Origin: Octopus sinensis
Taxonomy: Eukaryota
Assembly (NCBI RefSeq): GCF_006345805.1
Contig: NC_043000.1
Coordinates: 7,440,001 to 7,504,000 of the forward strand
Direction: 5' to 3'
Length of the DNA: 64,000 bases
This document shows, one piece after another, positions 570 to 44,628 of this stretch. Within the stretch, counting starts at the first letter, position 1; each line of letters begins with the position of its first letter. The notes beneath the pieces are model-generated. The model was not told the origin of the DNA, did no database searches, and saw only the letters and a program-made list of their open reading frames with translations. The translations under genes were made by a program, and so were the position numbers.

Positions 570-3500
570 GCTGGTGCCATGTAAAAAGCATGTGTGCCAG
601 TGCTATGTAAGAAGTGCTTGCTTTGGTTCTATGTAGAAAAACAATTGTTTGGGGCCAAGTAAAGAGCATTTGTGCCAGTGTTATGTAAGAAGTGCTTGCT
701 TTGGTTCTATGTAGAAAAACAATTGTTTGGGGCCAAGTCAAAAGCATGTGTGCCAGTGCTATGTAAAAGTGCTTGCTTTGGTTCTATGTAGAAAAACAAT
801 TGTTTGGGGCCAAGTAAAGAGCATTTGTGCCAGTGTTATGTAAGAAGTGCTTGCTTTGGTTCTATGTAGAAAAACAATTGTTTGGGGCCAAGTAAAGAGC
901 ATTTGTGCCAGTGCTATGTAAGAAGTGCTAGCTTTGGTTCTATGTAGAAAAACAATTGTTTGGGGCCAAGTAAAAAGCATGTGTGCCAGTGTTATGTAAG
1001 AAGTGCTTGCTTTGGTTCTATGTAGAAAAACAATTGTTTGGGGCCAAGTAAAGAGCATTTGTGCCAGTGTTATGTAAGAAGTGCTTGCTTTGGTTCTATG
1101 TAGAAAAACAATTGTTTGGGGCCAAGTAAAGAGCATTTGTGCCAGTGTTATGTAAGAAGTGCTTGCTTTGGTTCTATGTAGAAAAACAATTGTTTGGGGC
1201 CAAGTAAAGAGCATTTGTGCCAGTGCTATGTAAGAAGTGCTAGCTTTGGTTCTATGTAGAAAAACAATTGTTTGGGGCCAAGTAAAAAGCATGTGTGCCA
1301 GTGTTATGTAAGAAGTGCTTGCTTTGGTTCTATGTAGAAAAACAATTGTTTGGGGCCAAGTAAAGAGCATTTGTGCCAGTGTTATGTAAGAAGTGCTTGC
1401 TTTGGTTCTATGTAGAAAAACAATTGTTTGGGGCCAAGTCAAAAGCATGTGTGCCAGTGCTATGTAAAAAGTGCTTGCTTTGGTTCTATGTAGAAAAACA
1501 ATTGTTTGGGGCCAAGTAAAGAGCATTTGTGCCAGTGCTATGTAAGAAGTGCTAGCTTTGGTTCTATGTAGAAAAACAATTGTTTGGGGCCAAGTAAAAA
1601 GCATGTGTGCCAGTGTTATGTAAGAAGTGCTTGCTTTGGTTCTATGTAGAAAAACAATTGTTTGGGGCCAAGAAAAAAGCATTTGTGCCAGTGCTATGTA
1701 AGAAGTGCTAGCATTGGTTCCATGAAGAAAAACACTTGTTTGGGGCCAAGTAAAAAGCATGTGTGCCAGTGCTATGTAAAAAGTGCTTGCTTTGGTACCA
1801 TGAAGAAAAACACTTGTTTGGGGCCAAGTAAAAAGCATGTGTGCCAGTGCTATGTAAGAAGAGCTTGCTTTGGTTCTATGTAGAAAAACAATTGTTTGGG
1901 GCCAAGTATAAAGCATTTGTGCCAGTGCTATGTAAGAAGTGCTTGCATTGGTTCCATGAAGAAAAACACTTGTTTGGGGCCAAGTATAAAGCATGTGTGC
2001 CTGTGCTACGTAAAAAGTGTTTGCTTTGGTTCCATGAAGAAAAACACTTGTTTGGTACCAAGGATAAAGCATGTGTGCCAGTGCTATGTAAAAAGTGCTT
2101 GCATTGGTTCCATGAAGAAAAACACTTGTTTGCGGCCAAGGATAAAGCATGTGTGCCAGTGCTATGTAAGAAGTGCTTGCATTGGTTCCATGAAGAAAAA
2201 CACTTGTTTGGGGCCAAGAAAAATGCATGTGTGCCAGTGCTATGTAAGAAGAGCTTGCTTTGGTTCTATGTAGAAAAACAATTGTTTGGGGCCAAGAAAA
2301 AAGCATGTGTGCCAGTGCTATGTAAGAAGTGCTTGCATTGGTTCTATCTAGAAAAACAAATGTTTGGGGCCAAGAAAAAAGCATTTGTGCCAGTGCTATG
2401 TAAGAAGTGCTTGCATTGGTTCCATGAAGAAAAACACTTGTTTGGGGCCAAGTAAAAAGCATGTGTGCCAGTGCTATGTAAGAAGTGCTAGCATTGGTTC
2501 CATGAAGAAAAACACTTGTTTGGGGCCAAGTAAAAAGCATGTGTGCCAGAGCTATGTAAAAAGTGCTTGCTTTGACACCATGAAGAAAAACACTTGTTTC
2601 GGGCCAAGTAAAAAGCATGTGTGCCTGTGCTACGTAAAAAGTGTTTGCTTTGGTTCCATGAAGAAAAACACTTGTTTGGGGCCAAGGATAAAGCATGTGT
2701 GCCACTGCTATGTAAGAAGAGCTTGCTTTAGTTCTATGTAGAAAAACAATTGTTTGGGGCCAAGAAAAAAGCATGTGTGCCACTGCTATGTAAGAAGTGC
2801 TTGCTTTGGTTCTATGTAGAAAAACAATTGTTTGGGGCCAAGAAAAAAGCATTTGTGCCAGTGCTATGTAAGAAGTGCTAGCATTGGTTCCATGAAGAAA
2901 AACACTTGTTTGGGGCCAAGAAAAAGCATTTGTGCCAGTGCTATGTAAGAAGTGCTTGCATTGGTTCCATGAAGAAAAACACTTGTTTGGGGCCAAGTAT
3001 AAAGCATGTGTGCCAGTGCTACGTAAAAAGCGCTTGCATTGGTTCCATGAAGAAAAACACTTGTTTGGGGCCAAGTATAAAGCATGTGTGCCAGTGCTAT
3101 GTAAGAAGTGCTTGCATTGGTTCTATGTAGAAAAACAATTGTTTGGGGCCAAGAAAAAAGCATTTGTGACAGTGCTATGTAAGAAGTGCTTGCATTGGTT
3201 CTATGTAGAAAAACAATTGTTTGGGGCCAAGAAAAAGCATTTGTGCCAGTGCTATGTAAGAAGTGCTTGCATTGGTTCTATGAAGAAAAACACTTGTTTG
3301 GGGCCAAGTATAGAGCATGTGTGCCAGTGCTATGTAAAAGTGCTTGCTTTGGTTCTATGTAGAAAAACAATTGTTTGGGGCCAAGAAAAAAGCATTTGTG
3401 CCAGTGCTATGTAAGAAGTGCTTGCATTGGTTCTATGTAGAAAAACAAATGCTTGGGGCCAAGAAAAAAGCATTTGTGCCAGTGCTATGTAAGAAGTGCT

Positions 3501-6500
3501 TGCGTTGGTTCTATGTAGAAAAACAAATGTTTGGGGCCAAGAAAAAAGCATTTGTGCCAGTGCTATGTAAGAAGTGCTTGCTTTGGTTCTATGTAGAAAA
3601 ACAATTGTTTGGGGCCAAAAAAAAAGCATTTCTGCCAGTGCTATGTAAGAAGTGCTTGCTTTGGTTCTATGTAGAAAAACAATTGTTTGGGGCCAAGAAA
3701 AAAGCATGTGTGCCAGTGCTCTGTAAGAAGAGCTTGCTTTGGTTCTATGTAGAAAAACAATTGTTTGGGGCCAAGTAAAAAGCATGTGTGCCAGTGCTAT
3801 GTAAGAAGTGCTTGCTTTGGTTCCATGAAGAAAAACACTTGTTTGGGGCCAAGTATAAAGCATGTGTGCCAGTGCTACGTAAAAAGTGTTTGCTTTGGTC
3901 CCATGAAGAAAAACACTTGTTTGGGGCCAAGGATAAAGCATGTGTGCCAGTGCTATGTAAAAAGTGCTTGCTTTGGTTCCATGAAGAAAAACACTTGTTT
4001 GGGGCCAAGTATAAAGCATGTGTGCCAGTGCGATGTAAAAAGCACTTGCTTTGGTTCCATGAAGAAAAACACTTGTTTGGGGCCAAGTAAAAAGCATGTG
4101 TGCCAGTGCTATGTAAAAAGTGCTAGCTTTGGTTCCATGAAGAAAAACACTTGTTTGGGGCCAAGTATAAAGCATGTGTGCCAGTGCTATGTAAAAAGTG
4201 TTTGCTTTGGTTCCATGAAGAAAAACACTTGTTTGGGGCCAAGGGTAAAGCATGTGTGCCAGTGCTACGTAAAAAGTGCTTGCATTGGTACCATGAAGAA
4301 AAACACTTGTTTGGGGCCAAGTAAAAAGCATGTATGCCAGTGCTATGTAAAAAGTGCTTGCTTTGGTTCCATGAAGAAAAACGCTTGTTTGGGGCCAAGT
4401 ATAAAGCATGTGTGCCAGTGCTATGTAAAATGCGCTTGCTTTGGTTCCATGAAGAAAAACACTTGTTTGGGGCCAAGGATAAAGCATGTGTGCCAGTGCT
4501 ATGTAAAAAGTGCTTGCATTGGTTCCATGAAGAAAAACACTTGTTTGGGGCCAAGGATAAAGCATGTGTGCCACTGCTATGTAAGAAGAGCTTGCTTTGG
4601 TTCTATGTAGAAAAACAATTGTTTGGGGCCAAGAAAAAAGCATGTGTGCCAGTGCTATGTAAGAAGTGCTTGCATTGGTTCTATCTAGAAAAACAAATGT
4701 TTGGGGCCAAGAAAAAAGCATTTGTGCCAGTGCTATGTAAGAAGTGCTTGCATTGGTTCCATGAAGAAAAACAATTGTTTGGGACCAAGTAAAAAGCATG
4801 TGTGCCGGTGCCATGTAAGAAGTGCTTGCTTTGGTTCTATGTAGAAAAACAATTGTTTGGGGCCAAGAAAAAAGCATTTGTGCCAGTGCTATGTAAGAAG
4901 TGCTAGCATTGGTTCCATGAAGAAAAACACTTGTTTGGGGACAAGTAAAAAGCATGTGTGCCAGTGCTATGTAAGAAGTGCTAGCATTGGTTCCATGAAG
5001 AAAAACACTTGTTTGGGGCCAAGTAAAAAGCATGTGTGCCAGAGCTATGTAAAAAGTGCTTGCTTTGACACCATGAAGAAAAACACTTGTTTGGGGCCAA
5101 GTAAAAAGCATGTGTGCCAGTGCTATGTAAGAAGAGCTTGCTTTGGTTCTATGTAGAAAAACAATTGTTTGGGGCCAAGAAAAAAGCATTTGTGCCAGTG
5201 CTATGTAAGAAGTGCTTGCATTGGTTCCATGAAGAAAAACACTTGTTTGGGGCCAAGTATAAAGCATGTGTGCCTGTGCTACGTAAAAAGTGTTTGCTTT
5301 GGTTCCATGAAGAAAAACACTTGTTTGGGGCCAAGGATAAAGCATGTGTGCCACTGCTATGTAAGAAGAGCTTGCTTTGGTTCTATGTAGAAAAACAATT
5401 GTTTGGGGCCAAGAAAAAAGCATGTGTGCCACTGCTATGTAAGAAGTGCTTGCTTTGGTTCTATGTAGAAAAACAATTGTTTGGGGCCAAGAAAAAAGCA
5501 TTTGTGCCAGTGCTATGTAAGAAGTGCTAGCATTGGTTCCATGAAGAAAAACACTTGTTTGGGGCCAAGAAAAAAGCATTTGTGCCAGTGCTATGTAAGA
5601 AGTGCTTGCATTGGTTCCATGAAGAAAAACACTTGTTTGGGGCCAAGTATAAAGCATGTGTGCCAGTGCTACGTAAAAAGGGCTTGCATTGGTTCCATGA
5701 AGAAAAACACTTGTTTGGGGCCAAGTATAAAGCATGTGTGCCAGTGCTATGTAAGAAGTGCTTGCATTGGTTCTATGTAGAAAAACAATTGTTTGGGGCC
5801 AAGAAAAAAGCATTTGTGCCAGTGCTATGTAAGAAGTGCTTGCATTGGTTCTATGTAGAAAAACAATTGTTTGGGGCCAAGAAAAAAGCATTTGTGCCAG
5901 TGCTATGTAAGAAGTGCTTGCATTGGTTCTATGAAGAAAAACACTTGTTTGGGGCCAAGTATAGAGCATGTGTGCCAGTGCTATGTAAGAAGTGCTTGCT
6001 TTGGTTCTATGTAGAAAAACAATTGTTTGGGGCCAAGAAAAAAGCATTTGTGCCAGTGCTATGTAAGAAGTGCTTGCATTGGTTCTATGTAGAAAAACAA
6101 ATGTTTGGGGCCAAGAAAAAAGCATTTGTGCCAGTGCTATGTAAGAAGTGCTTGCTTTGGTTCTATGTAGAAAAACAAATGTTTGGGACCAAGAAAAAAG
6201 CATTTGTGCCAGTGCTATGTAAGAAGTGCTTGCTTTGGTTCTATGTAGAAAAACATTGTTTGGGGCCAAAAAAAAAGCATTTCTGCCAGTGCTATGTAAA
6301 AGTGCTTGCTTTGGTTCTATGTAGAAAAACAATTGTTTGGGGCCAAGAAAAAAGCATGTGTGCCAGTGCTCTGTAAAAGAGCTTGCTTTGGTTCCATGAA
6401 GAAAAACACTTGTTTGGGGCCAAGTAAAAAGCATGTGTGCCAGTGCTATGTAAAAGTGCTTGCTTTGGTTCCATGAAGAAAAACACTTGTTTGGGGCCAA

Positions 6501-9500
6501 GTATAAAGCATGTGTGCCAGTGCTATGTAAAAAGTGCTTGCTTTGGTTCCATGAAGAAAAACACTTGTTTGGGGCCAAGTATAAAGCATGTGTGCCAGTG
6601 CGATGTAAAAAGCACTTGCTTTGGTTCCATGAAGAAAAACACTTGTTTGGGGCCAAGTAAAAAGCATGTGTGCCAGTGCTATGTAAAAAGTGCTTGCTTT
6701 GGTTCCATGAAGAAAAACACTTGTTTGGGCCAAGTATAAAGCATGTGTGCCAGTGCTATGTAAAAAGTGTTTGCTTTGGTTCCATGAAGAAAAACACTTG
6801 TTTGGGGCCAAGGGTAAAGCATGTGTGCCAGTGCTATGTAAAAAGTGCTTGCTTTGGTTCCATGAAGAAAAACACTTGTTTGGGGCCAAGTATAAAGCAT
6901 GTGTGCCAGTGCGATGTAAAAAGCGCTTGCTTTGGTTCCATGAAGAAAAACACTTGTTTGGTGCCAAGTAAAAAGCATGTGTGCCAGTGCTATGTAAAAT
7001 GCGCTTGCTTTGGTTCCATGAAGAAAAACACTTGTTTGGGGCCAAGTAAAAAGCATGTGTGCCAGTGCTATGTAAAAAGTGCTTGCATTGGTTCCATGAA
7101 GAAAAACACTTGTTTGGGGCCAAGTATAAAGCATGTGTGCCAGTGCTACGTAAAAAGTGCTTGCTTTGGTACCATGAAGAAAAACACTTGTTTGGGGCCA
7201 AGTAAAAAGCATGTATGCCAGTGCTATGTAAAAAGTGCTTGCTTTGGTTCCATGAAGAAAAACGCTTGTTTGGGGCCAAGTATAAAGCATGTGTGCCAGT
7301 GCTATGTAAAAAGTGTTTGCTTTGGTTCCATGAAGAAAAACACTTGTTTGGGGCCAAGTAAAAAGCATGTGTGCCAGTGCTACGTAAAAAGTGTTTGCTT
7401 TGGTTCCATGAAGAAAAATACTTGTTTGGGGCCAAGTATAAAGCATGTGTGCCAGTGCTATGTAAAAAGCACTTGCTTTGGTTCCATGAAGAAAAACACT
7501 TGTTTGGGGTCAAGTATAAAGCATGTGTGCCAGTGCTATGTAAAAAGTGCTTGCATTGGTACCATGAAGAAAAACACTTGTTTGGGGCCAAGTATAAAGC
7601 ATGTGTGCCAGTGCTATGTAAAAAGCACTTGCTTTGGTTCCATGAAGAAAAACACTTGTTTGGGGCCAAGTATAAAGCATGTGTGCCAGTGCTATGTAAA
7701 AAGCACTTGCTTTGGTTCCATGAAGAAAAACACTTGTTTGGGGCCAAGTATAAAGCATGTGTGCCAGTGCTATGTAAAAAGCGCTTGCTTTGGTTCCATG
7801 AAGAAAAACACTTGTTTGGGGCCAAGTATAAAGCATGTGTGCCAGTGCTATGTAAAAAGCGCTTGCTTTGGTTCCATGAAGAAAAACACTTGTTTGGGGC
7901 CAAGTATAAAGCATGTGTGCCAGTGCTATGTAAAAAGCGCTTGCTTTGGTTCCATGAAGAAAAACACTTGTTTGGGGCCAAGTATAAAGCATGTGTGCCA
8001 GTGCTATGTAAAAGGTTCTTGCTTTGGTTCCATGAAGAAAAACACTTGTTTGGGGCCAAGTATAAAGCATGTGTGCCAGTGCTATGTAAAAAGCGCTTGC
8101 TTTGGTTCCATGAAGAAAAACACTTGTTTGGGGCCAAGTATAAAGCATGTGTGCCAGTGCTATGTAAAAAGTGCTTGCTTTGGTTCCATGAAGAAAAACA
8201 CTTGTTTGGGGCCAAGTATAAAGCATGTGTGCCAGTGCTACGTAAAAAGTGTTTGCTTTGGTTCCATGAAGAAAAACACTTGTTTGGGGCCAAGTAAAAA
8301 GCATGTGTGCCAGTGCTATGTAAAAAGTGCTTGCTTTGGTTCCATGAAGAAAAACACTTGTTTGGGGCCAAGTATAAAGCATGTGTGCCAGTGCTATGTA
8401 AAAAGCGCTTGCTTTGGTTCCATGAAGAAAAACACTTGTTTGGGGCCAAGTATAAAGCATGTGTGCCAGTGCTACGTAAAAAGTGTTTGCTTTGGTTCCA
8501 TGAAGAAAAACACTTGTTTGGGGCCAAGTATAAAGCATGTGTGCCAGTGCTATGTAAAATGCGCTTGCTTTGGTTCCATGAAGAAAAACACTTGTTTGGG
8601 GCCAAGTAAAAAGCATGTGTGCCAGTGCTATGTAAAAAGTGCTTGCATTGGTACCATGAAGAAAAACACTTGCTTGGGGCCAAGTATAAAGCATGTGTGC
8701 CAGTGCTACGTAAAAAGTGTCTGCTTTGGTTCCATGAAGAAAAACACTTGTTTGGGGCCAAGGATAAAGCATGCGTGCCAGTGCTATGTCAAAAGTGCTT
8801 GCTTTGGTTCCATGAAGACAAACACTTGTTTGGGGCCAAGGATAAAGCATGTGTGCCAGTGCTATGTAAAAAGTGCTTGCTTTGGTTCCATGAAGAAAAA
8901 CACTTGTTTGGGGCCAAGTATAAAGCATGTGTGCCAGTGCTATGTAAAATGCGCTTGCTTTGGTTCCATGAAGAAAAACACTTGTTTGGGGCCAAGTAAA
9001 AAGCATGTGTCCCATGCTATGTAAAAAGTGCTTGCTTTGGTTCCATGAAGAAAAACACTTGTTTGGGGTCAAGTATAAAGCATGTGTGCCAGTGCGATGT
9101 AAAAAGCGCTTGCTTTGGTTCCATGAAGAAAAACACTTGTTTGCGGCCAAGTAAAAAGCATGTGTGCCAGTGCTATGTAAGAAGTGCTTGCTTTGGTTCC
9201 ATGAAGAAAAACAATTGTTTGGGGCCAAGTAAAAAGCATGTGTGCCAGTGCTATGTAAAAAGTGCTTGCTTTGGTTCCATGAAGAAAAACACTTGTTTGG
9301 GGCCAAGGGTAAAGCATGTGTGCCAGTGCTATGTAAAATGCGCTTGCTTTGGTTCCATGAAGAAAAACACTTGTTTGGGGCCAAGGATAAAGTATGTGTG
9401 CCAGTGCTATGTAAAAAGCGCTTGCTTTGGTTCCATGAAGAAAAACACTTGTTTGGGGCCAAGTATAAAGCATGTGTGCCAGTGCTACGTAAGAAGAGCT

Positions 9501-12500
9501 TGCTTTGGTTCTATGTAGAAAAACACTTGTTTGGGGCCAAGTAAAAAGCATGTGTGCCAGTGCTATGTAAAAAGCGCTTGCTTTGGTTCCATGAAGAAAA
9601 ACACTTGTTTGGGGCCAAGTATAAAGCATGTGTGCCAGTGCTACGTAAGAAGAGCTTGCTTTGGTTCTATGTAGAAAAACAATTGTTTGGGGCCAAGTAA
9701 AAAGCATGTGTGCCAGTGCTATGTAAAAAGTGCTTGCTTTGGTTCCATGAAGAAAAACACTTGTTTGGGGCCAAGTATAAAGCATGTGTGCCAGTGCTAC
9801 GTAAAAAGTGCTTGCTTTGGTTCCATGAAGAAAAACACTTGTTTGGGGCCAAGTATAAAGCATGTGTGCCAGTGCTATGTAAAAAGTGCTTGCTTTGGTT
9901 CCATGAAGAAAAACACTTGTTTGGGGCCAAGTATAAAGCATGTGTGCCAGTGCTATGTAAAAAGTGCTTGCTTTGGTTCCATGAAGAAAAAAAACTTGTT
10001 TGGGGCCAAGTAAAAAGCATGTGTGCCAGTGCTATGTAAGAGGTACTTGCTTTGTTTCTACGTAGAAAAACAATTGTTTGGGGCCAAGTAAAAAGCATGT
10101 GTGCCAGTGCTATGTAAGAAGAGCTTGCTTTGGTTCTATGTACAAAAACAATTGTTTGGGGACAAGTAAAAAGCATGTGTGCCAGTGCTATGTAAGAAGA
10201 GCTTGCTTTGGTTCTATGTACAAAAACAATTGTTTGGGGAGAAGTAAAAAGCATGTGTGCCAGTGCTATGTAAGAAGAGCTTGCTTTGGTTCTATGTACA
10301 AAAACAATTGTTTGGGGACAAGTAAAAAGCATGTGTGCCAGTGCTATTTAAGAAGAGCTTGCTTTGGTTCTATGTACAAAAACAATTGTTTGGGGCCAAG
10401 TAAAAAGCATGTGTGCCAGTGCTATGTAAGAAGAGCTTGCTTTGGTTCTATGTAGAAAAACAATTGTTTGGGGCCAAGTAAAAAGCATTTGTGCCAGTGC
10501 TATGTAAGAAGTGCTTGCTTTGGTTCCATGAAGAAAAACACTTGTTTGGGGCCAAGTATAAAGCATGTGTGCCAGTGCTATGTAAAAAGTGCTTGCTTTG
10601 GTTCTATGTAGAAAAACAATTGTTTGGGGACAAGAAAAAAGCATGTGTGCCAGTGCTACGTAAGAAGTGCTTGCTTTGGTTCCATGAAGAAAAACACTTG
10701 TTTGGGGCCAAGTATAAAGCATGTGTGCCAGTGCTATGTAAAAAGTGCTTGCTTTGGTTCTATGTAGAAAAACAATTGTTTGGGGACAAGAAAAAAGCAT
10801 GTGTGCCAGTGCTACGTAAGAAGTGCTTGCTTTAGTTCCATGAAGAAAAACACTTGTTTGGGGCCAAGTAAAAAGCATGTGTGCCAGTGCTACGTAAGAA
10901 GTGCTTGCTTTGGTTCCATGAAGAAAAACACTTGTTTGGGGCCAAGTAAAAAGCATGTGTGCCAGTGCTATGTAAGAAGTGCTAGCATTGGTTCCATGAA
11001 GAAAAACACTTGTTTGGGGCCAAGTAAAAAGCATGTGTGCCAGTGCTATGTAAAAAGTGCTTGCTTTGGTACCATGAAGAAAAACACTTGTTTGGGGCCA
11101 AGTAAAAATCATGTGTGCCAGTGCTATGTAAGAAGAGCTTGCTTTGGTTCTATGTAGAAAAACAATTGTTTGGGGACAAGAAAAATGCATGTGTGCCAGT
11201 GCTATGTAAGAAGTGCTTGCTTTGGTTCTATGTAGAAAAACAATTGTTTGGGGCCAAGTATAAAGCATGTGTGCCAGTGCTATGTAAAAGTGCTTGCTTT
11301 GGTTCTATGTAGAAAAACAATTGTTTGGGGCCAAGGATAAAGCATGTGTGCCAGTGCTATGTAAGAAGTGCTTGCATTGGTTCTATGAAGAAAAACACTT
11401 GTTTGGGGCCAAGTATAAAGCATGTGTGCCAGTGCTATGTAAGAAGTGCTTGCATTGGTTCCATGAAGAAAAACACTTGTTTGGGGCCAAGTATAAAGCA
11501 TGTGTGCCAGTGCTATGTAAGAAGTGCTCGCTTTGGTTCTATGTAGAAAAACAATTGTTTGGGGACAAGAAAAAAGCATGTGTGCCAGTGCTATGTAAGA
11601 AGTGCTTGCTTTGGTTCTATGTAGAAAAACAATTGTTTGGGGCCAAGTATAAAGCATGTGTGCCAGTGCTACGTAAGAAGTGCTTGCTTTGGTTCTATGT
11701 AGAAAAACAATTGTTTGGGGACAAGAAAAATGCATGTGTGCCAGTGCTATGTAAGAAGTGCTTGCTTTGGTTCTATGTAGAAAAACAATTGTTTGGGGCC
11801 AAGTATAAAGCATGTGTGCCAGTGCTATGTAAGAAGTGCTTGCTTTGGTTCTATGTAGAAAAACAATTGTTTGGGGCCAAGGATAAAGCATGTGTGCCAG
11901 TGCTATGTAAGAAGTGCTTGCATTGGTTCCATGAAGAAAAACACTTGTTTGGGGCCAAGTATAAAGCATGTGTGCCAGTGCTATGTAAGAAGTGCTTGCA
12001 TTGGTTCCATGAAGAAAAACACTTGTTTGGGGCCAAGTATAAAGCATGTGTGCCAGTGCTATGTAAGAAGTGCTCGCTTTGGTTCTATGTAGAAAAACAA
12101 CTGTTTGGGGCCAAGTATAAAGCATGTGTGCCAGTGCTACGTAAGAAGTGCTTGCTTTGGTTCTATGTAGAAAAACAATTGTTTGGGGACAAGAAAAAAG
12201 CATGTGTGCCAGTGCTATGTAAGAAGTGCTTGCTTTGGTTCTATGTAGAAAAACAATTGTTTGGGGCCAAGGATAAAGCATGTGTGCCAGTGCTATGTAA
12301 AAAGTGCTTGCTTCGGTACCATGAAGAAAAACACTTGTTTGGGGACAAGAAAAAAGCATGTGTGCCAGTACTATGTAAAAAGTGCTTGCTTTGGTACCAT
12401 GAAGAAAAACACTTGTTTGGGGCCAAGTATAAAGCATGTGTGCCAGTGCTATGTAAGAAGTGCTTGCATTGGTTCCATGAAGAAAAACACTTGTTTGGGG

Positions 12501-15500
12501 CCAAGTATAAAGCATGTGTGCCAGTGCTATGTAAGAAGTGCTTGCATTGGTTCCATGAAGAAAAACACTTGTTTGGGGCCAAGTATAAAGCATGTGTGCC
12601 AGTGCTATGTAAGAAGTGCTTGCTTTGGTTCTATGTAGAAAAACAATTGTTTGGGGACAAGAAAAAAGCATGTGTGCCAGTGCTACGTAAAAAGCGCTTG
12701 CTTTGGTTCCATGAAGAAAAACACTTGTTTGGGGCCAAGTAAAAAGCATGTGTGCCAGTGCTATGTAAGAAGTGCTTGCATTGGTTCTATGTAGAAAAAC
12801 AATTGTTTGGGGCCAACAAAAAAGCATTTGTGCCAGTGCTACGTAAAAAGCGCTTGCTTTGGTTCCATGAAGAAAAACACTTGTTTGGGGCCAAGTAAAA
12901 AGCATGTGTGCCAGTGCTATGTAAGAAGTGCTTGCATTGGTTCTATGTAGAAAAACACTTGTTTGGGGCCAAGTATAAAGCATGTGTGCCAGTGCTACGT
13001 AAAAAGCGCTTGCTTTGGTTCCATGAAGGAAAACACTTGTTTGGGGCCAAGTAAAAAGCATGTGTGCCAGTGCTATGTAAGAAGTGCTTGCATTGGTTCT
13101 ATGTAGAAAAACAATTGTTTGGGGCCAACAAAAAATCATTTGTGCCAGTGCTACATAAAAAGCGCTTGCTTTGGTTCCATGAAGAAAAACACTTGTTTGG
13201 GGCCAAGTAAAAAGCATGTGTGCCAGTGCTATGTAAGAAGTGCTTGCATTGGTTCTATGTAGAAAAACAATTGTTTGGGGCCAACAAAAAAGCATTTGTG
13301 CCAGTGCTACGTAAAAAGCGCTTGCTTTGGTTCCATGAAGAAAAACACTTGCTTGGGGCCAAGTAAAAAGCATGTGTGCCAGTGCTATGTAAGAAGTGCT
13401 TGCATTGGTTCTTTGTAGAAAAACAATTGTTTGGGGCCAACAAAAAAGCATTTGTGCCAGTGCTACGTAAAAAGTGCTTGCTTTGGTTCCATGAAGAAAA
13501 ACACTTGTTTGGGGCCAAGTAAAAAGCATGTGTGCCAGTGCTATGTAAGAAGTGCTTGCATTGGTTCTATGTAGAAAAACAATTGTTTGGGGCCAACAAA
13601 AAAGCATTTGTGCCAGTGCTACTTAAAAAGCGCTTGCTTTGGTTCCATGAAGAAAAACACTTGTTTGGGGCCAAGTAAAATGCATGTGTGCCAGTGCTAT
13701 GTAAGAAGTGCTTGCATTGGTTCTATGTAGAAAAACAATTGTTTGGGGCCAACAAAAAAGCATTTGTGCCAGTGCTACGTAAAAAGCTCTTGCTTTGGTT
13801 CCATGAAGAAAAACACTTGTTTGGGGCCAAGTAAAAAGCATGTGTGCCAGTGCTATGTAAGAAGTGCTTGCATTGGTTCTATGTAGGAAAACAATTGTTT
13901 GGGGCCAACAAAAAAGCATTTGTGCCAGTGCTACGTAAAAAGCGCTTGCTTTGGTTCCACGAAGAAAAACACTTGTTTGGGGCCAAGTAAAAAGCATGTG
14001 TGCCAGTGCTATGTAAGAAGTGCTTGCATTGGTTCTATGTAGAAGAACAATTGTTTGGGGCCAAGGATAAAGCATGTGTGCCAGTGCTATGTAAAAAGTG
14101 CTTGCTTCGGTACCATGAAGAAAAACAATTGTTTGGGGACAAGAAAAAAGCATGTGTGCCAGTGCTATGTAAGAAGTGCTTGCTTTGGTACCATGAAGAA
14201 AAACACTTGTTTGGGGCCAAGTATAAAGCATGTGTGCCAGTGCTATGTAAGAAGTGCTTGCTTTGGTTCTATGTAGAAAGACACTTGTTTGGGGCCAAGT
14301 ATAAAGCATGTGTGCCAGTGCTACGTAAGAAGTGCTTGCTTTGGTTCTATGTAGAAAAACAATTGTTTGGGGACAAGAAAAAAGCATGTGTGCCAGTGCT
14401 ATGTAAGAAGTGCTTGCATTGGTTCCATGAAGAAAAACACTTGTTTGGGGCCAAGTATAAAGCATGTGTGCCAGTGCTATGTAAGAAGTGCTTGCTTTGG
14501 TACCATGAAGAAAAATACTTGTTTGGGGCCAAGTATAAAGCATGTGTGCCAGTGCTATGTAAAAAGTGCTTGCTTTGGTACCATGAAGAAAAATACTTGT
14601 TTGGGGCCAAGTATAAAGCATGTGTGCCAGTGCTACGTAAGAAGTGCTTGCTTTGGTTCTATGTAGAAAAACAATTGTTTGGGGACAAGGAAAAAGCATG
14701 TGTGCCAGTGCTATGTAAGAAGTGCTTGCATTGGTTCCATGAAGAAAAACACTTGTTTGGGGCCAAGTATAAAGCATGTGTGCCAGTGCTATGTAAGAAG
14801 TGCTTGCATTGGTTCCATGAAGAAAAACACTTGTTTGGGGCCAAGTATAAAGCATGTGTGCCAGTGCTACGTAAGAAGTGCTTGCTTTGGTTCTATGTAG
14901 AAAAACAATTGTTTGGGGACAAGAAAAAAGCATGTGTGCCAGTGCTATGTAAGAAGTGCTTGCATTGGTTCCATGAAGAAAAACACTTGTTTGGGGCCAA
15001 GTATAAAGCATGTATGCCAGTGCTATGTAAAAGTGCTTGCTTCGGTACCATGAAGTAAAACACTTGTTTGGGGCCAAGTAAAAAGCATGTATGCCAGTGC
15101 TATGTAAAAGTGCTTGCTTCGGTACCATGAAGTAAAACACTTGTTTGGGGCCAAGTAAAAAGCATGTATGCCAGTGCTATGTAAAAGTGCTTGCTTCGGT
15201 ACCATGAAGTAAAACACTTGTTTGGGGCCAAGTAAAAAGCATGTATGCCAGTGCTATGTAAAAGTGCTTGCTTTGGTACCATGAAGAAAAACACTTGTTT
15301 GGGGCCAAGTAAAAGCATGTATGCCAGTGCTATGTAAAAGTGCTTGCTTCGGTACCATGAAGTAAAACACTTGTTTGGGGCCAAGTAAAAAGCATGTGTC
15401 CCAGTGCTATGTAAGAAGCGCTTGCTTTGGTTCCATGAAGAAAAACACTTGTTAGGGGCCAAGTAAAAAGCATGTGTGCCACTGGTATGTAAGAGGCGCT

Positions 15501-15860
15501 TGCTTTGGTTCCATGAACAAAAACACTTGTTTGGGGCCAAGTAAAAGCATGTGTGCCAGTGCTATGTAAGAAGTGCTTGCTTTGGTTCCATGAACAAAAA
15601 CACTCTTTTGGGGCCAAGTAAAAAGCATGTGTGCCAGTGCTATTTAAAAAGGGCTTTCTTTGGTTCCATGAAGAGAAACACTTGTTTGGGGCCAAGTAAA
15701 AAGCATTTGTGCCAGTGCTACGTAAAAAGTGCTTGCTTTGGTTCCCTGTAGAAAAACACTTGTTTGGGGCCAAGTAAAAAGCATGTGTGCCAGTGCTATG
15801 GAAAAGGTGCTTACTTTGGTTCCATGAAGAAAAACACTTGTTTGGGGCCAAGTAAAAAGC
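570..15860 (+). repeat. 78-bp satellite array, ~196 units, each unit 3 x 26-bp diverged subunits
   Basis: Consensus gggccaagtaaaaagcatgtgtgcca-gtgctatgtaaaaagtgcttgctttg-gttccatgaagaaaaacacttgtttg repeats continuously. It starts at gctggtgccatgtaaaaagca (570) and ends at gggccaagtaaaaagc (15860). The 26-aa periodicity of all overlapping ORFs confirms the 78-nt period. Confidence 0.98.
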
Positions 15861-16013
15861 CCCCAGTAACGTGGTTGGCATTAGGAAGTGTATCCAGTCA
15901 TAGAAACCATGCAAAATGAAAAAGAGAACTGGAACCAGGGCAGCTCTCTGGCTGGCAAGCTCCTCTCAAATCAGCATGGAAAACATATATTAAATGATGA
16001 TGGTGATGATGAG
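15861..16013 (+). mobile_element. 3' tail of an RTE-tail element fused to the end of the satellite
   Basis: gtggttggcattaggaag...cagcatggaaaacatatattaaatgatgatggtgatgatg matches the tails at 16480-16639, 17870-18030 and 48950-49104. Confidence 0.85.
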
Positions 16014-16118
16014 GGGATATGAACCTAGGAATTGTGAATAAATACTGTGATGCATTTAACAACCGTCTTTAATGTTGATTTCTAACATAGGCACAAGGAA
16101 TTATGCTTTGGCAGGGAG

Positions 16119-16639
16119 CACAGAGACAATGACGAAAGACCGAGACCTCTTGAGATATGCTGTGACTGCGAAGACCTGACAAATGAGGTGAGTTCTTGGC
16201 TGTTTCCTGCACCAGCTTCACATAGAAGCCCCAGCCCATCTAAAGTACCTTGGATCGCAGGACGGCCTGCTGTGCTTACCTTGGTTCATAGGGCGACCTG
16301 CTGTGCTTGAGGAGACCTGTTGAGTCAAGTAGAACAACATCAACATCAAATGGAAATTGTAGTTGTGATACCTGTGCCAGTGGCACGTAAAAAGCACCAT
16401 CCAAACATGGCTGATGCCAGTGCCACCTTGACTGGCACCTGTGCTGGTGGCACGTAAAAAGCACCCACTGCACTCATGGAGTGGTTGGCATTAGGAAGGG
16501 CATCCACCTGTAGAAACACTGCCAGATCAGACTGGAGCCTGGTGCAGCCTCCTGGCTTCCGAGACCCCGGTCAAACCGTCCAACCCATGCCAGCATGGTA
16601 AACGGACGTTAAACGATGATGATGATGATGATGATGATG
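16119..16639 (+). mobile_element. 5'-truncated RTE LINE (last codons, 3'UTR with VNTR, (GAT)n tail)
   Basis: gaccgagacctcttgagatatgctgtg matches the DRDLWKYAV coding end of the RTE at 48351. It is followed by ggcacgtaaaaagcacc repeats and gttaaacgatgatgat. Confidence 0.85.
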
Positions 16640-17328
16640 TATAGATGGCCTCCAAAATTTGAGGTGTACTTATTTCGTAGGCACTGGAACAATAAAAGGC
16701 AAAATCCACCATTACAGGATTTGAATTTAGATCATAGCTACAACTAAATACTGCAAGTTATTTTCTCCATCACTGCACCATGACGCTGTCCTCTCACTGA
16801 TTTTAATATTGAATTTTACATAAACTTGAGAATCGTAAATAAATGTTTTCAAGTTTATCGTTTTCCTTTTAATGTTACACTGAAACTGTCTTATTTTTAC
16901 TTACAGCAAATCAGTTCAGATCTAAATTTAGATTCTCAGTTTTCCAGTTACCATGTTTTATTGGAAAACAAGCAGAAGTGATTTTAGGTACATCTACTAA
17001 CTATCTTCTTCGAAATCAGCTTGAAGTATATTTAGCATCTATAGTAGTTCGTCACTTTCTAATTTCATCACAGTGTTACGCTGACATTTCGTAAATACCT
17101 CACCATCATCATCTTGTTATGTCATTGCAGCCTGTCATTTGACATTATCACATATAACTGTGTTGTTTCATGTTGCCATTCGCTGCTTTATTTATTCATT
17201 TCCTGTCAGACCCGATCTCAACATTGCGCTATCATTGACTTTCGTTTCAAACAAAGATTATTTACCTGCATGAAGTTTGTAGCTGTGTCTACAACTTTAT
17301 TGCTTATATGTAAGCTGTTTGATTATAT

Positions 17329-20884: not shown

Positions 20885-21557
20885 ACTTTCAGAACAAGAG
20901 AGAAGGAGACACTCATGGTCCTCTGGAAAACATTCGTCCTCAGCCGCTTGGACTACTGTTCCCAACTATGGTCACCACACAATATAAAACTAACAGCAGA
21001 ACTCGAAGCAATTCAGAGAAGCTACACAAAGAAGATCGTCTCAATGCAAAATATCAGCTACTGGGAAAGACTGAAAGTATTAAACCTCTTCTCCCTAGAG
21101 CGGAGGCGGGAGAGATATGCAGTGATATACATCTGGAAAATCCTGGAGGGTCTTGTCCCAAACTTTGGCATTCAAAGTTACCCCAACCGCAGAACGGGGC
21201 GCCACTGCATGGTGCCAAAGATTCCTACATCACCATCAAAATACAGGTCCAGATACTGCAACAGCTTGGGTTTCAGAGGACCACAGCTCTTTAACATCCT
21301 CCCTAAATGCCTGAGAGACTTACATGGTGTGGATGTGGGTTTCTTTAAAACTAAACTGGATCTCTTCTTGTCGGGAGTCCCAGATGAACCTACCTCACGA
21401 CAGGAAACGCAGATGCGGGCAGCAGCATCGAACTCCCTTGTTGATCAAGTGCCACGTATCAGAGGTGGATTCACATATTAGTGTAGCTCATTCAGCGGTG
21501 GTGCCCCAGCATGGCCGCGGCCTTCAGGCGAAAACATTTTTAAGGATTTAAGGATTT
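20885..21557 (+). mobile_element. 5'-truncated CR1-group LINE: C-terminal ORF2 region, 3'UTR and (TAAGGATT)n tail
   Basis: ORF 20915-21481 LWKTFVLSRLDYCSQLWSP...LEAIQRSYTKKI...YWERLKVLNLFSLERRRERY...FKTKLD is the typical post-RT domain of CR1/L2-group ORF2. The frame is still open. Confidence 0.9.
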
Positions 21558-34110: not shown

Positions 34111-34556
34111 TTTACATGCTACCAAGGTGGCACTGGCATCGACCACACTCGAATGGTACTTTTTACATGCCACCAGCATGGGTGCCAGTCACATGGCACT
34201 GGCACTGGCCATGCTTGAATTTTGCTGTTTCTGTTCCACTGGCACGGGTGCCGGTCAGGTGGCACTAGCATTGACCATGCTCGAATGGTACTTTTTACGT
34301 TCCACCAGCATGGGAGCCAGTGTGACAGCATTTGCATCGACCACACTCGAATGGTACTTTTTACATGCCACCAGCATGGGTGCCTCTCAGGCGGCACTGG
34401 CACTGGCCATGCTCAAATTGTGCTTTTTCTGTGCCACTGGCTTGGGTGCCAGTCAGGTGGCACTGGCATCAGCCACGACTATGTTTTCACTTGACTCAAC
34501 ATGTCTTCTCAAGCACAGCATATTGCCTGATGATTGAAGGGTACTTTTAAATGGGC
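34111..34556 (-). mobile_element. RTE 3'UTR fragment with a ~70-bp VNTR containing the gtaaaaag core
   Basis: Repeated gaatggtactttttacatgccaccagcatggg units, followed by the ttgactcaac...tctcaagcacagc segment shared with 16290-16330. Confidence 0.75.
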
Positions 34557-38629: not shown

Positions 38630-39010
38630 ACACAAGAACTTCCGGCGGTTTATTTTTTGTTTGTCACTGTTATTTATGATAACCCTAACCCTAAAACCTT
38701 AACCCTAACCCTAAAACCCTAACTCAAAAATCCTAACCTTAAAACCAAAACCAGTACAAATGCATGAACGATTTCATAAATAACAGTGACAAACGAAAAA
38801 TACACCACTGATAGTTGTTGATAAACAATGGCAGTAATTTTATTCAGCTGAATACACGTCATTGATTGGTTGAAATTACCGAAATACGAATACTTTAATG
38901 TGAAATTACTTCGTAAATATAAGTTTTTCTCAAAAATGCTAAAAGTAACAGATGTTTTATATGACACATTCTACCAGTGTCCGAAGTTTGAAAGGGTTTA
39001 GTTACAAAAA
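38630..39010. mobile_element. Interspersed element with (TAACCC)-like repeats enclosed by an inverted repeat
   Basis: 38651-38679 and 38774-38802 are a 28/29 inverted match around taaccctaaccctaaaacc units. The architecture resembles Helentron-associated (DINE-1-like) elements. Confidence 0.55.
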
Positions 39011-39040: not shown

Positions 39041-39543
39041 GATTATTCTGACAAATGCAATGCTTATTCATTCACATTGTTTTCATTTAATCATGCATTA
39101 TCTCAAAGCTTCAAGATTACGATGATGTCATCATCATCAGCTAATGTCTTTTTTCCATGCTGGCAAGGGTTGAACGGTTTGATTGGAGCTGGTAAGGTCA
39201 GAGGCTGTATCATGCTCCATTGTCAGTTCAGGAATGGTTTCTATAGCTGGATGCTCTTCCTAATGCTAGCCACACCACTGAGTACTGGGTACTTTTTATG
39301 TGGCACTAGCATCAGTACTTTTAATGTGGCACCAGCATGAATGCTCTTTATGTGGCACCAGCACCTGTGCTTTTTATGTGGCACAATTCTGCTGTGGAGG
39401 ATAGGTAGGCCTTCGTGATGTGATTTGATATTTTTAGAATAACATTGCAAGGTTAGTGTGAGAGACCAGATGTGGCCAGTCTGGACATAAAACAGATACA
39501 ATATTTGTACTGGATATGGTCGGTTTAAATGCTAAATAGTTAA
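39041..39543 (-). mobile_element. TTAA-ended MITE copy 3, interrupted by an RTE-tail element (39129-39415) carrying 3.6 x 26-bp repeats
   Basis: The MITE end aatgctaaatagttaa is at 39543. The insert is flanked by tgatgt at 39123-39128 and 39416-39421. The 26-bp units start at 39291, 39317, 39343 and 39369. Confidence 0.8.
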
Positions 39544-40251
39544 TGCTTAGTGACTCTCTCAAATCACCAATGCTTTGCCTTTCATGCAAATGAACATTGA
39601 TCATTCATTAATTCTTAATCAATCCATTTTCATCCAGCCTCTTGCAGATCTTCGGAATTTAATGCTCATATCTCATAACCAAGCAGCATCCTCTTTCTTG
39701 GATGTGCTTCATACAATCTTCCCTTTGCATGTGTGTGTATGTTTGTAGAGAGAGAGAGAGAGAGAGATTTTGTTGTCAACAGTTTTAATGCCTCTTTTTT
39801 TATTGTTGTTGTTCTGATTCAGTAAAAGTCTAATTGACACCTGATGCCGTTTCAGAGATTTTTCTGGGAGCAGGGAACTGACATGATCGATCGCTGAAAT
39901 TAAACTTTACTATTATAGCTATCAAGCAGAAATCTGATCTCTGGAGTGTGCCGTATTTACTGGCTTGGAATATTCTTCCAGATTAGTTTAGCTTTTCTTG
40001 ATTGATTGATTCGTAAACGGAAGGGGAAGAAGAGTGAAGAATAAAGTTGCTAGCGAGTTAAAAGTATTCTCAGCCTAAAAAAGTTTGTTCTTTTAATAGA
40101 ATTTTATATTGGAATTTAGTATCATGACTACTACTGCCTCTTCCCACACATCTCTAGCAATGAGCCAATGAAGGAGCTTGACCTAGTAGAAACAGCAGTT
40201 AAATCACCCTCAAATTGCACCCTTTCATCTTAAAAAAATGAAGAAAAGCAA

Positions 40252-40603
40252 TATTTCATCTGCCGTTATGTTCTGAGTTCTAATTCCGCGAGGTTGACTT
40301 TGCCTTTCATCCTTTCGGGGTTGATAAATTAAGTGCCAGTTACATACTGGGGTTGATGTGATCGACTTAATCCATTTGTCCCCTCTGTGTTTAGCCCTTT
40401 GTGGGTAGTAAAGAAATAGGTATTTTGTCTGCCGCTATGTTCTGAGTTCAAATTCCGCTGAGGTTGACTTTGCCTTTCATCCTTTCGGGGTCGATTAAAT
40501 AAGTACCAGTTACGCACTGGGGGTCGATCTAATTGACTTAATCCCTTTGTCTGTCCTTGTTTATCCCCTCTGTGTTTAGCCCCTTGTGGGCAATAAAGAA
40601 ATA
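40252..40603 (+). mobile_element. Head-to-tail dimer of the SINE family A body
   Basis: Units start at tatttcatctgccg (40252) and tattttgtctgccg (40421), joined through aaagaaatagg. Confidence 0.88.
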
Positions 40604-41289
40604 AAAATATTAATGATGAGGATATTCTGCTGAGGTCGACTTTGCCTTTCATCATTTTGGGATTGATAAAATAGGTACCAGTTGAACACTGGGGTCAATG
40701 TAATTGACTTACTCCCTCCCCCAAAATTTCTGGCCTTGCGCCAAAATTTGAAACCAATATTAATGATGTGGATGATGATGATGATATTATAATGAGTGGA
40801 TTTGGTTCAAATTATTATTCTTCACAGACATATAAAGCTTAGCCTGTATCTAAAATTGAATCAATAAGTTTAATAGTGTATTTACTTCATACTACAAAAA
40901 AGAAAATTAGATTTTAATCAAGATAAATATTCCATTATCACCAACTCCTCACAGTAGCTGTTTCATCACAGTTAAGTCATCAGTTATCTGTTTGCCAGAA
41001 GCCATCTCATACAACATTCTCTGTATTTTACACAATTTCAAAAATTCCTGTTAGTTGCTCTTATTAAAGTAAGTTATCTCTCGTATTTGGTGTTTTTAGA
41101 TTGTAAACACTCTGAGAAGGAAGTTTTGTTTTCTAATCGTATAGATAATCTCAGTTAATCAATCTTCTCCACTCACTATGGTACATATGTGAGACCCCAC
41201 TATATTGGTGTTAAGAAGAGCACTCCCCTAAGGTATTTTCTCTCTGCTAAAAGAGAATGATTTGATTTATATAATAACATTTTTGTTGT

Positions 41290-42090
41290 TTCATATTAGT
41301 GTTCTTCTTCATCATCATCATCGTTGTCGTTATCCTCCTCCTCTTCCTCCTCCGTCTGTTTTCCATGCTGGCATGGGTTAGATGGTTTGACAGGATTTGG
41401 CAAGGCCAGGAGCCACACCAGGTTCCATAGTCTGTTTTGGTTTGGTTTCTACGCCTGGATGCCTTTTCTAATACCAACCACACTACAGAGTGTGCTGGGT
41501 GCTTTTTATGTGACACCATCACCAGTACTTTTTATGTGGCACCAGCACTTTTTACATGGCACCGTGGCTTTTAGATCTCAGTTCTGTTGTGGGTAGGTCT
41601 TCTTGAGTGCAGCAATGCATGACTTACCTCTGTCTTCTGTCTTCTCTTTGTAAGGTTCAGTATTTTGAGATCGAGCTTCAATGCTTCGTCACATGTCTTG
41701 CTTTTCCACAACTTCCCTCCACTTTAACTGATCAACTCTTCTTTATGCAACTGTCCTCATCCCATGATCAAACCAATGCAGTCTCCTCTCTTGCACACTA
41801 CATATAATTCCTCTTATGCACAACCTCTCTCTCTCTCAATACACTAGTGCTCTGTTGCACATGCACACTGACATCACACATCCAGTTGCGCATACTAGTT
41901 TTGTTCCTCTCTAGCCTTCACATGTCCTCTGCATTCAGAGCTCACACATCACTACCTTCTATCATTGAAGTTTGTACACATGCATCATACAATCTTTCCT
42001 TCATTTGGATTGGGCACCATACAATCTTTCCTTCACTTTGTTGCCAACAAAAGTTACCATTTGTAGGAGCAATACTAACCATCCTTATGT
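41290..42090 (-). mobile_element. Degraded 5'-truncated RTE LINE (C-terminal ORF remnant, 3'UTR and tail)
   Basis: Reverse complement is similar to 47900-49104 (for example tgtatgatgcatgtgtac and gtgcaagagaggagactgc). It carries short 26/20-bp gtgccacataaaaagca repeats near 41500-41565. Confidence 0.75.
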
Positions 42091-42350
42091 AACAAGTCTG
42101 TGATTGCAAACTGTGGTTGCGATTTTGAATTTATTGATACCACCAGCAAAGTATAAATATTAATCTTGTAAATATTGTGGAACTATTTTTATTGATTTTT
42201 TTTTCTCCCATAATAACTACCTTTCACATTAAGTATATTTATGGCGTAATTTCCTCTTTCCATTTCTTTGAATTCATCATCATTGCCATCATCAACATCA
42301 TTTAATGTCTGCTTTCCATGCTGGCATGGGTTGGATGGTTTGACAGGAGC

Positions 42351-42589
42351 GATGGTTAGGCGGCGAGCTGGCAGAAACGTTAGCACGCCGGGCGAAATGC
42401 TTAGTGGTATTTCGTCTGCCGTTACGTTCTGAGTTCAAATTCCGCCGAGGTCGACTTTGCCTTTCATCCTTTCGGGGTCGATAAATTAAGTACCACTTAC
42501 GCACTGGGGTCGATATAATCGACTTAATCCCCTTGTCTGTCCTTGTTTGTCCCCTCTATGTTTAGCCCCTTGTGGGTAGTAAAGAAATA
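42351..42589 (+). mobile_element. SINE family A inserted into an RTE-tail element with a 14-bp TSD
   Basis: ggtttgacaggagc occurs at 42337-42350 and 42590-42603. Confidence 0.92.
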
Positions 42590-42877
42590 GGTTTGACAGG
42601 AGCTGGCAAGCCAGAGGACTGTACAAGGCTCTACTGTCTGTTTTGGCATGGTTTTTATGGCTGTATGCCCTTCCTAATGTCAACCACTTTACAGCATGGA
42701 CTGGGTGCTTTTTATATGGCACAAGCTGCAGTGAGGTCACCAAATAATTTACAAGACAAGACTATTTTATTTTACCATCACAGTTAAAATATGTATTAAT
42801 TTTAAGAAGACTGAAATCCATATCCTATAACCAACCCTGACTAACTTAGATCTCAAGTGACTATGTTTTATCTAGAT

Positions 42878-43604: not shown

Positions 43605-44027
43605 TGTATATATGTGCGTGTATCTGTTATGTGTGTGTTTGTATTTCTTTGACCTTCATGTGTGTTTATTCTCCGGTTGTAAACCACAGATTCCTGAGAG
43701 TGTCATCTGCTTGCAGTCCATCATAAAAGCATGTCCAGTCTTCTTCACATGTCTTGACATCGTGCACAATCATTGCAAACAAGACTCATTCATACAATGT
43801 GGCTTGCTTGTAAAACGTGTCCAGGCAGCTGTTTGTTGTTTCATAGACTGGGAAACTATTACCATGCTTGCTAAAACAAGTAAAGGCTGGTGACAGAATG
43901 ATTATTTGGTTGTAGAGAACTCTGCCTCAACATATGCTTGTCTGACCTATGAAAGCATAGGAAAGCAGATCTTAAAATGATGATGATGATATAATTTAAT
44001 GTTGTTTAGCTCCTGTTGAGTAGACTT

Positions 44028-44628
44028 ATTCCTTTATTACCCACAAGGGGCTAAACATAGAGGGGACAAACAAGGACAGACAAACGGATTAAATCGATTG
44101 CATCGACCCCAGTGCGTAACTGGTACTTAATTTATCGACCCCGAAAGGATGAAAGGCAAAGTCGACCTTGGCGGAATGTGAACTCAAAATGTAACTGCAG
44201 ATGAAATACCTATTTCTTTACTACCCACAAGGGGCTAAACACAGAGGGGACTAACAAGGACAGACAAACAGATTAAGTTGATTACATCGACCCCCAGTGC
44301 GTAACTGGTACTTAGTTTATCGACCCCGAAAGGATGAAAAGTAAAGTTGACCCGGCGGAATTTGAACTCAGAATGTAACGGCAGACGAAATACCTATTTC
44401 TTTACTGCCCACAAGGGGCTAAACACAGAGAGGACAAATAAGGACAGACAAACGGATTTAGTCAATTATATCGACTCCAGTGCATAACTGGTACTTATTT
44501 AATTGACCCCGAAAGGATGAAAGGCAAAGTCGACCTTGGTGGAATTTGAACTCAGAACGTAGTGGCAGACGAAATACCTCTAAGCATTTCGCCCGGTGTA
44601 CTAACGATTCTGCCAGCTCGCCGCCTTC
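44028..44628 (-). mobile_element. Trimeric SINE family A (one head plus three ~170-bp bodies) within a single 18-bp TSD
   Basis: ctcctgttgagtagactt occurs at 44010-44027 and 44629-44646, around three tandem bodies joined at gaaatacc|tatttctttac. Confidence 0.92.

Follow-up and report, generated by a model that had tools for sequence, protein, structure and literature searches.

How did some 15 kb of 78-bp tandem repeats come to lie directly against the 3′ tail of a retrotransposon in Octopus sinensis? The array stands at the left end of the stretch analysed here (64,000 nucleotides of contig NC_043000.1, called the window below), and the retrotransposon is a long interspersed nuclear element (LINE) with further copies in the same window. 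We think it quite probable that the satellite is the minisatellite from the 3′ untranslated region (3′UTR) of one LINE copy, expanded in the place where that copy stood.

The 78-bp array and its edges

The array and the element sequence attached to it are made up of four features.

570-591, plus strand: first array unit, in the ancestral form of the LINE minisatellite (GCTGGTGCCATGTAAAAAGCAT); it marks the 5′ end of a truncated element copy
572-15860, plus strand: satellite array, 196 monomers of 78 bp with three ~26-bp subunits each (from Tandem Repeats Finder, segmentation and variant map)
15843-15860, plus strand: last, partial S1 unit (from multiple alignment and sequence)
15861-16014, plus strand: LINE 3′ tail of the same copy, 154 bp, with a (GAT)n-like end GATGATGGTGATGATGAGG (closing stretch CAGCATGGAAAACATATATTAAATGATGATGGTGATGATGAGG); found by BLAST to other tails

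Tandem Repeats Finder (TRF) reports a period of 78 for window positions 572-15860, with 196.2 copies, 93% matches and no indels, overlapped by a weaker 26-bp row with 55% matches. Segmentation based on the register gives 196 monomers arranged head to tail, 177 of exactly 78 bp and 16 of 77 bp, with a mean pairwise identity of 91.6%; an earlier note on this DNA had put the amplification at about 200-fold, and the count agrees with it. The same note had divided the 78-bp unit into three 26-bp subunits. This division is upheld by the 26-bp TRF row and by the circular autocorrelation of the consensus, which reaches its maximum at shift 26 with 37/78 matches (P = 0.0015 from 2000 shuffles of the 78-mer consensus, mean best shift 28.4). 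The subunits, each of ~26 bp, are S1 (GGGCCAAGTAAAAAGCATGTGTGCCA), S2 (GTGCTATGTAAGAAGTGCTTGCTTTG) and S3 (GTTCCATGAAGAAAAACACTTGTTTG).

The monomers are not uniform. Their alignment has 11 polymorphic columns and holds 140 distinct sequences, and the states of three linked columns distinguish two kinds of monomer, a (TTCTATGTAGAAAAACAATTG) and B (TTCCATGAAGAAAAACACTTG), which are arranged in blocks and alternate strictly, as (aB)n, over about monomers 153-172. A megablast comparison of the array with itself was uninformative, and we used a monomer distance matrix instead, in which remote monomers differ more than near ones, with 5.2 mismatches at lag 2 and 7.0 at lags >80; the array also contains a few duplications that span 4-7 monomers. 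Distance-dependent divergence, short multi-monomer duplications and the (aB)n run are the texture expected from local unequal exchange. The order of the variants also bears on the size of the array. Long tandem arrays pose difficulties for assembly, and the array could be real while its 196 copies are an assembly artefact, collapsed or inflated. We regard this as distinctly improbable: the distinct monomers follow one another in an ordered, non-periodic pattern, unlike that of a collapsed or looped assembly.

Because 78 is divisible by 3 and some frames of the unit are without stops, the array contains long open reading frames (ORFs). A search of a protein database returned no relatives of these, and we dismiss them as coding sequence, the frames staying open by chance. 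We treat the array as neutral, non-coding DNA and claim no function for it. Scans for the exact pattern of the 78-mer gave 0 matches in metagenome, prokaryote-genome and viral collections, none of which includes an octopus genome, so that these zeros are uninformative on octopus.

At its left edge the array starts at 570 (GCTGGTGCCATGTAAAAAGCA) with a unit that agrees with the LINE repeat core at 21/22 positions, whereas each of the other 195 monomers agrees at 13-18/22. A tblastn-type search of the window for remnants found no LINE sequence upstream of this start. At the right edge the array ends at 15860 within a partial unit, ...GGGGCCAAGTAAAAAGC (also given as ...TTTGGGGCCAAGTAAAAAGC), to which the tail CCCCAGTAACGTGGTTGGCATTAGGAAG...CAGCATGGAAAAC...TTAAATGATGATGGTGATGATGAGG is joined without a spacer, itself ending at ~16014. 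The earlier note had described the array as running spacer-free into a retroelement tail, and both the sequence and the alignment confirm this. The partial S1 is the counterpart of the final unit of the LINE minisatellite, which in every copy runs into the unique sequence ...CACCCAG.... All array units lie on the plus strand, the same as the tail.

The LINE tail and its minisatellite

Is the tail in fact the 3′ end of a LINE? We compared the copies of the window and one locus on an O. vulgaris chromosome (L001). BLAST searches with the satellite's tail and with the neighbouring copy at 16340-16640 found ~10 further tail copies in the window, on both strands (a density of ~11 tails in 48 kb), and all complete copies finish in (GAT)n or (ATG)n. 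In four copies, D, H, G and B, a reverse-transcriptase (RT) ORF or its remnant lies directly upstream of the tail (tblastn). We conclude that the tail forms the 3′ end of a LINE, of which the shorter tail copies are 5′-truncated insertions. A short interspersed nuclear element (SINE) was considered as an alternative identity of the tail and rejected: there is no tRNA-like or Rfam match, and the longer copies extend upstream into the RT ORF. The copies on which the comparison draws include the following.

39128-39415, minus strand: element G, four 26-bp units (3.7 copies; TRF 39289-39384) and tail (from BLAST and alignment)
41353-42013, minus strand: element H, decayed RT C-terminus, three units and tail
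50950-51175, minus strand: element E, two units and tail; E1 resembles S3 and E2 resembles S1
47409-49104, plus strand: element D, sister subfamily, 5′-truncated, with an RT/PHD/C-terminal ORF at 47409-48404, a ~700-nt 3′UTR, tail and (GAT)n
16114-16640, plus strand: element B, 5′-truncated, with the last ORF codons (tblastn 16114-16182), two repeat cores, tail and (GAT)8

Two of these had been pointed out before, as a second tail copy with 26-bp units at ~39129-39415 and as 26/20-bp units at ~41500-41565. The former is element G, where TRF finds 3.7 units on the minus strand and an RT remnant lies upstream at 39548-39797; we use it as the best model within the window for the unexpanded state. 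The latter is element H, with units of 20, 26 and 26 bp at 41499-41563 (TRF 41520-41563, period 20) and its RT C-terminus at 41696-42013 (tblastn 46% over 110 amino acids). The ORF of element D has the YTDD reverse-transcriptase motif, a PHD finger and a C-terminal GRGRPRKTW...DRDLW, and its 3′UTR contains 199-bp and 63-bp repeats; the copy at L001 is 88% identical to it and shows the same succession of ORF, 61-63-bp tandem repeat and tail. Element B begins only ~100 bp beyond the satellite's tail (gap 16015-16114) and has the same orientation, which may point to a local insertion hotspot for this LINE family.

Every copy has, between the stop codon and the tail, repeat units around the core GGTG(C/G)CAYRTAAAAAGCAC. 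Searched for with <=4 mismatches, the 19-nt core is present at 23 places beyond the array, all of them in these 3′ ends; the number expected from shuffles is 0.05. Two subfamilies can be told apart, with units of 61-66 bp (B, C, D, J and L001) and of 26 bp (E, F, G, H and I), and the satellite's tail falls in the second. Unit counts range from 1 in I, 2 in E and 3 in H to 3.7 in G, and J has 5.2 units of 66 bp; in the window and at L001 the other copies thus have 1-5 units each, as against 196 monomers in the array. Larger duplications occur in element D, where 199 bp are present x 2 in the 3′UTR (48490-48879, plus strand), and in element F, where a duplication of 102 bp x 1.9 covers a repeat unit and the first part of the tail (52951-53253, minus strand). 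Because unit numbers vary and D and F have these larger duplications, the 3′UTR region seems generally unstable and prone to tandem duplication. At 34125-34540 (minus strand) the 3′UTR repeat of the sister subfamily also forms an array, 66 bp x 5.2, which has kept the upstream 3′UTR and has no tail on its 3′ side; it could be either an expansion of intermediate size or a truncated copy.

Are the subunits of the satellite related to these units? The earlier note had expected them to align with the repeats of the tail copies better than shuffled sequence does. Against the 12 units of elements E-I this is so for S1 (z = 5.7 from shuffles) and S2 (z = 4.1) and for blocks of subunits (z up to 7.9), whereas S3 alone gives z = 1.4, which is not significant; the likeness of S3 is convincing only in context, when it is compared with unit E1 or aligned as part of a block. 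Block S1S2S3S1 is identical to the four units of G at 63/96 positions (66%, z = 7.9), block S2S3S1 to H at 48/64 (75%, z = 7.7), and block S3S1 to E at 34/47 (72%, z = 6.5). The satellite's tail is decayed, with a 15-bp deletion and 62-73% identity in the tail alignment, and is 64-66% identical to the tails of G, H and E. The identities of 64-66% are equal to or below those of the blocks (66-75%), which is what one would expect of a 78-mer that is the repeat of this very copy.

The order of the units agrees as well. The last S2, S3 and partial S1 of the array align with the three final units in G and in H (in E, with the two final ones), and the alignment then continues through ...CCCAG...GTGGTTGGCATTAGG: the junction of array and tail is collinear and in register. 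The best partners of the single subunits, G1 for S1, H1 for S2 and E1 for S3, each occupy the matching slot. An unrelated satellite could also have come to lie beside a LINE tail by accident, or an array already present could have received a LINE insertion at its edge, and with tails as dense as they are here adjacency by itself means little. An accident of this kind is nevertheless extremely improbable, and close to refuted, in view of the collinear, in-register junction, the common orientation, the block z-scores of 6.5-7.9 and the ancestral unit at the far edge.

Homology and collinearity tie the satellite to this LINE, and a further question is whether it arose at this locus. The 78-mer might belong to a dispersed family that was born elsewhere from the 3′UTR of the same LINE, for example in a subfamily with 78-bp repeats, and that was spread by retrotransposition of truncated copies or otherwise. 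The 3′UTR repeats do vary between copies (1-4 units of 26 bp, units of 61-66 bp, duplications of 199 bp and 102 bp), which speaks for such a history. However, neither a 78-bp periodicity nor a match to the 78-mer is found in any of the ten other window copies or in L001, the first unit is ancestral while the last continues into the tail, and the subunits are decayed like this copy's own tail, which fits amplification from this old copy. We therefore hold an origin elsewhere to be unlikely and prefer expansion in place.

Age and probable course of the expansion

The decay of the tail and that of the monomers allow the insertion of the copy and the growth of the array to be dated relative to each other. 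Measured against the consensus of the other copies of the 26-bp subfamily, the tail has a Jukes-Cantor distance (JC) of 0.31, and those copies themselves have 0.21-0.31; the monomers differ from the array consensus by JC 0.06. The insertion is thus several-fold older than the expansion, or than its last homogenisation, and the copy was already decayed when the expansion began. On a published scale, where JC 0.09 corresponds to ~25 million years (My) and JC 0.2 to ~56 My (PMC13282606), the array would be ~15-20 My old and the insertion >60 My, as a rough estimate only.

From the homology, collinearity, orientation, edge states and relative ages observed, we infer a mechanism of exchange that starts from four units. 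The source would be a non-LTR (long terminal repeat) retrotransposon of Octopus, a LINE with apurinic endonuclease (APE), RT and PHD domains (APE-RT-PHD type) and possibly of the RTE clade, whose 3′UTR minisatellite varied in copy number. The ancestral minisatellite would have had a ~26-bp unit with the core GGTGCCAYRTAAAAAGCAC, just 5′ of a conserved ~170-nt tail ending in (GAT)n. An old copy, 5′-truncated within the minisatellite, would have been inserted at window position 570 with about four units and the tail, a state like that of G. After ~25-30% decay, a misaligned exchange or replication slippage between units 1 and 4, which are 78 bp apart, would have duplicated the three-unit block, and repeated unequal exchange in the 78-bp register would then have led to 196 copies.

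Such a start predicts a particular arrangement of half units. The inner S1 should be a hybrid that took its 5′ half from unit 4 (TTTGGGGCCAAG) and its 3′ half from unit 1 (AAAAAGCATGTGTGCCAG); the original 5′ half of unit 1 should be left at the left edge only (GCTGGTGCCATG), and the original 3′ half of unit 4 at the right edge only (AAAAAGCCCCCAG...). The predicted hybrid and both edge states are found as such in the sequence. An exchange between units 1 and 4 would thus account for the hybrid inner S1, for the ancestral 5′ half of the first unit and for the last partial unit that runs into the tail.

The earlier note had proposed a different path to the 78-mer, in which a single 26-bp unit was triplicated at the locus, diverged and was then amplified. 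The common core of the three subunits and the significant 26-bp period are in favour of it. Against it, 3-4 differing units already stand ahead of the same tail in other copies, and S2 is closest to H1, S3 to E1 and S1 to G1, in matching slots. The subunits differ from one another by ~35-50%, about as much as the decay of an old copy would bring about (tail JC 0.31), so that the extra step is superfluous; a four-unit minisatellite like that of G already provides the 78-bp register from unit 1 to unit 4. Triplication at the locus is accordingly rather unlikely in our judgement. What stands of the proposed path is its in-situ part, the expansion of the copy's own 3′UTR minisatellite, for which the junction, the z-scores and the first unit speak, and what can be dropped is triplication followed by divergence.

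Several observations weigh against expansion in place as we have described it. One is the weakness of S3 taken by itself, given above. Another concerns the descent of the subunits from three particular ancestral units, which is suggestive: the rotation test singles out the expected register for E alone (12 vs 2 and 2), does so marginally for H and does not separate the registers in G. The sequences on either side of 570...16014 share no direct repeat of >=8 nt, such as a target-site duplication would leave, and without it a single insertion event is not proven. Some LINE clades make no target-site duplication, and the copy is old, so that its lack says little. Finally, the length of the array comes from one assembly, and the search for further arrays of the 78-mer covered the window and L001.

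If expansion in place is correct, this might be the first cephalopod satellite on record for which the birth can be followed at the level of single bases, with a LINE 3′UTR minisatellite as its seed and both un-homogenised edges kept; more broadly, the hypervariable 3′UTR repeats of this very abundant octopus LINE family might be a general source of tandem repeats in the octopus, with several loci at different stages of expansion. We put this forward tentatively, as a possibility that we ourselves rather doubt.

The host element, other satellites and neighbouring repeats

Which LINE does the copy belong to? Pfam finds only RVT_1 and PHD in the ORF of element D, and the PHD finger sits between the RT palm and the C-terminal segment. 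Relatives of this ORF include proteins predicted for Octopus vulgaris (76% identity) and for O. bimaculoides, together with many sequences of marine invertebrates; >3000 relatives at E <= 1e-20 come from marine metagenome assemblies, Hydractinia and Mercenaria (P0001-P0240 are among them). One relative, P0070, is labelled as a protein of a Herbaspirillum metagenome-assembled genome and is probably animal DNA contaminating that bin. Every copy in the window is 5′-truncated, and the order of APE and RT is read from relatives only: the longer proteins P0128, P0133 and P0173 have Exo_endo_phos followed by RVT_1 in one protein, in P0133 followed also by PHD. Among solved structures (PDB) the best matches are R2 and LINE-1 ORF2p. 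The Pfam and PDB matches reach as far as a non-LTR reverse transcriptase with PHD and do not place the element in a clade.

The label RTE is plausible and unproven. An RTE-like trait, a 3′ end of short tandem repeats as opposed to poly(A), is seen in all complete copies. To our knowledge an internal PHD finger is not among the listed features of RTE elements. The C-terminal motif RLRWYGHV...GRGRPRKTW...DRDLW resembles, as we presume, the C-terminus of BovB, which we treat as a lead only and not as a test. The label is plausible because of the (GAT)n end taken together with two reports: microsatellites are common in RTE elements, and the octopus RTE-2_OV has a 600-nt 3′UTR that is mostly a microsatellite (PMC9115989); elements of the RTE-BovB type have expanded in cephalopods (PMC10294476). 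A search for the tail sequence in the supplementary data of the octopus RTE study produced a single match, attributable to chance.

The route from a retroelement to satellite DNA is already known, and the octopus locus is an unusually clean example of it that would not surprise a specialist. In legumes, tandem repeats in the 3′UTR of Ogre LTR retrotransposons seed satellites, among them PisTR-A in pea and nine satellites in Lathyrus sativus (PMC7004042); for the birth of satellites from Ogre 3′UTR repeats PMC6947457 cites Macas 2009. As in the octopus array, short 3′UTR repeats of a dispersed retrotransposon expand there and the arrays remain embedded in element sequence. Unlike Ogre, the octopus host is a non-LTR LINE in a mollusc, the monomer is a block of three units, and one expanded locus is seen. 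Satellites derived from SINEs are described in squamate reptiles (PMC10702118), and a Nin-SINE origin is proposed for PcH-Sat of the limpet Patella (PMC11121367). These share with the octopus array a non-LTR retroelement as seed and unequal recombination as the proposed first step, and PcH-Sat is molluscan too, but their monomers are parts or wholes of the SINE body, whereas the octopus monomer is a pre-existing minisatellite in a LINE 3′UTR.

Tandem repeats carried and spread by the 3′ region of a LINE are the common ground with RTE-2_OV, which belongs to the same genus, and with the RTE-borne microsatellite families of Lepidoptera (PMC2887409). There, microsatellites have been moved by transposition, unlike the expansion in place of 15 kb considered here, and RTE-2_OV is compared by its description only. 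Satellite DNA derived from LINEs is also known from chicken, whose centromeric satellites come from CR1-C elements, and from PROsat, which comes from LINE-1 (table in PMC6947457); rodents, too, are among the animals in which satellites from SINEs and LINEs are known (PMC10702118, PMC11121367, PMC6947457). CR1-C satellites and PROsat differ from the octopus array in that they involve other LINE clades and other element parts, and a seed copy with both edges is generally unavailable there.

We found neither this octopus satellite nor any survey of octopus satellites in the searchable literature, and a full-text search for sequence strings matched no relevant paper. Cephalopod satellite DNA is barely described, and the 78-mer may find use as a marker in cytogenetics or population studies and help to check repeat annotation. 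The locus leaves the understanding of satellite origin unchanged and is worth a note for repeat annotators. As a compact teaching example of a satellite born from a transposable element, it lets the seed, the register of the first duplication and the homogenised expansion be read together, with unexpanded sisters a few kb away.

Other repeats of the window were noted in passing. Two LINE tails, at 42274-42726 (minus strand) and 51910-52307 (plus strand), are broken at the identical point (after GTCAAACC) by the same ~230-bp tRNA-like SINE in opposite orientation; read in its own orientation, the SINE starts with GGCGGCGAGCTGGCAGAAACGTTAGCACGCC and contains ...GAGTTCAAATTCCGCC. A 14-bp target duplication is present at one of the two copies and none at the other. 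The pair could reflect site-specific insertion or a family of composite elements. The same SINE-like unit is dispersed at ~60-250, 40300-40700 and 47150-47330, and at 44027-44579 it forms a 184-bp x 3 tandem array with 88% matches, possibly another, smaller instance of a retroelement that has turned into a tandem repeat. An ORF of 188 amino acids at 20915-21481 (plus strand) has no Pfam match and appears to be the C-terminal part of an unrelated LINE, CR1/L2-like as judged by its sequence. At 38680-38746 lies an interstitial telomere-like (TAACCC)n repeat, with 2-3 copies of 14-20-bp composite units.

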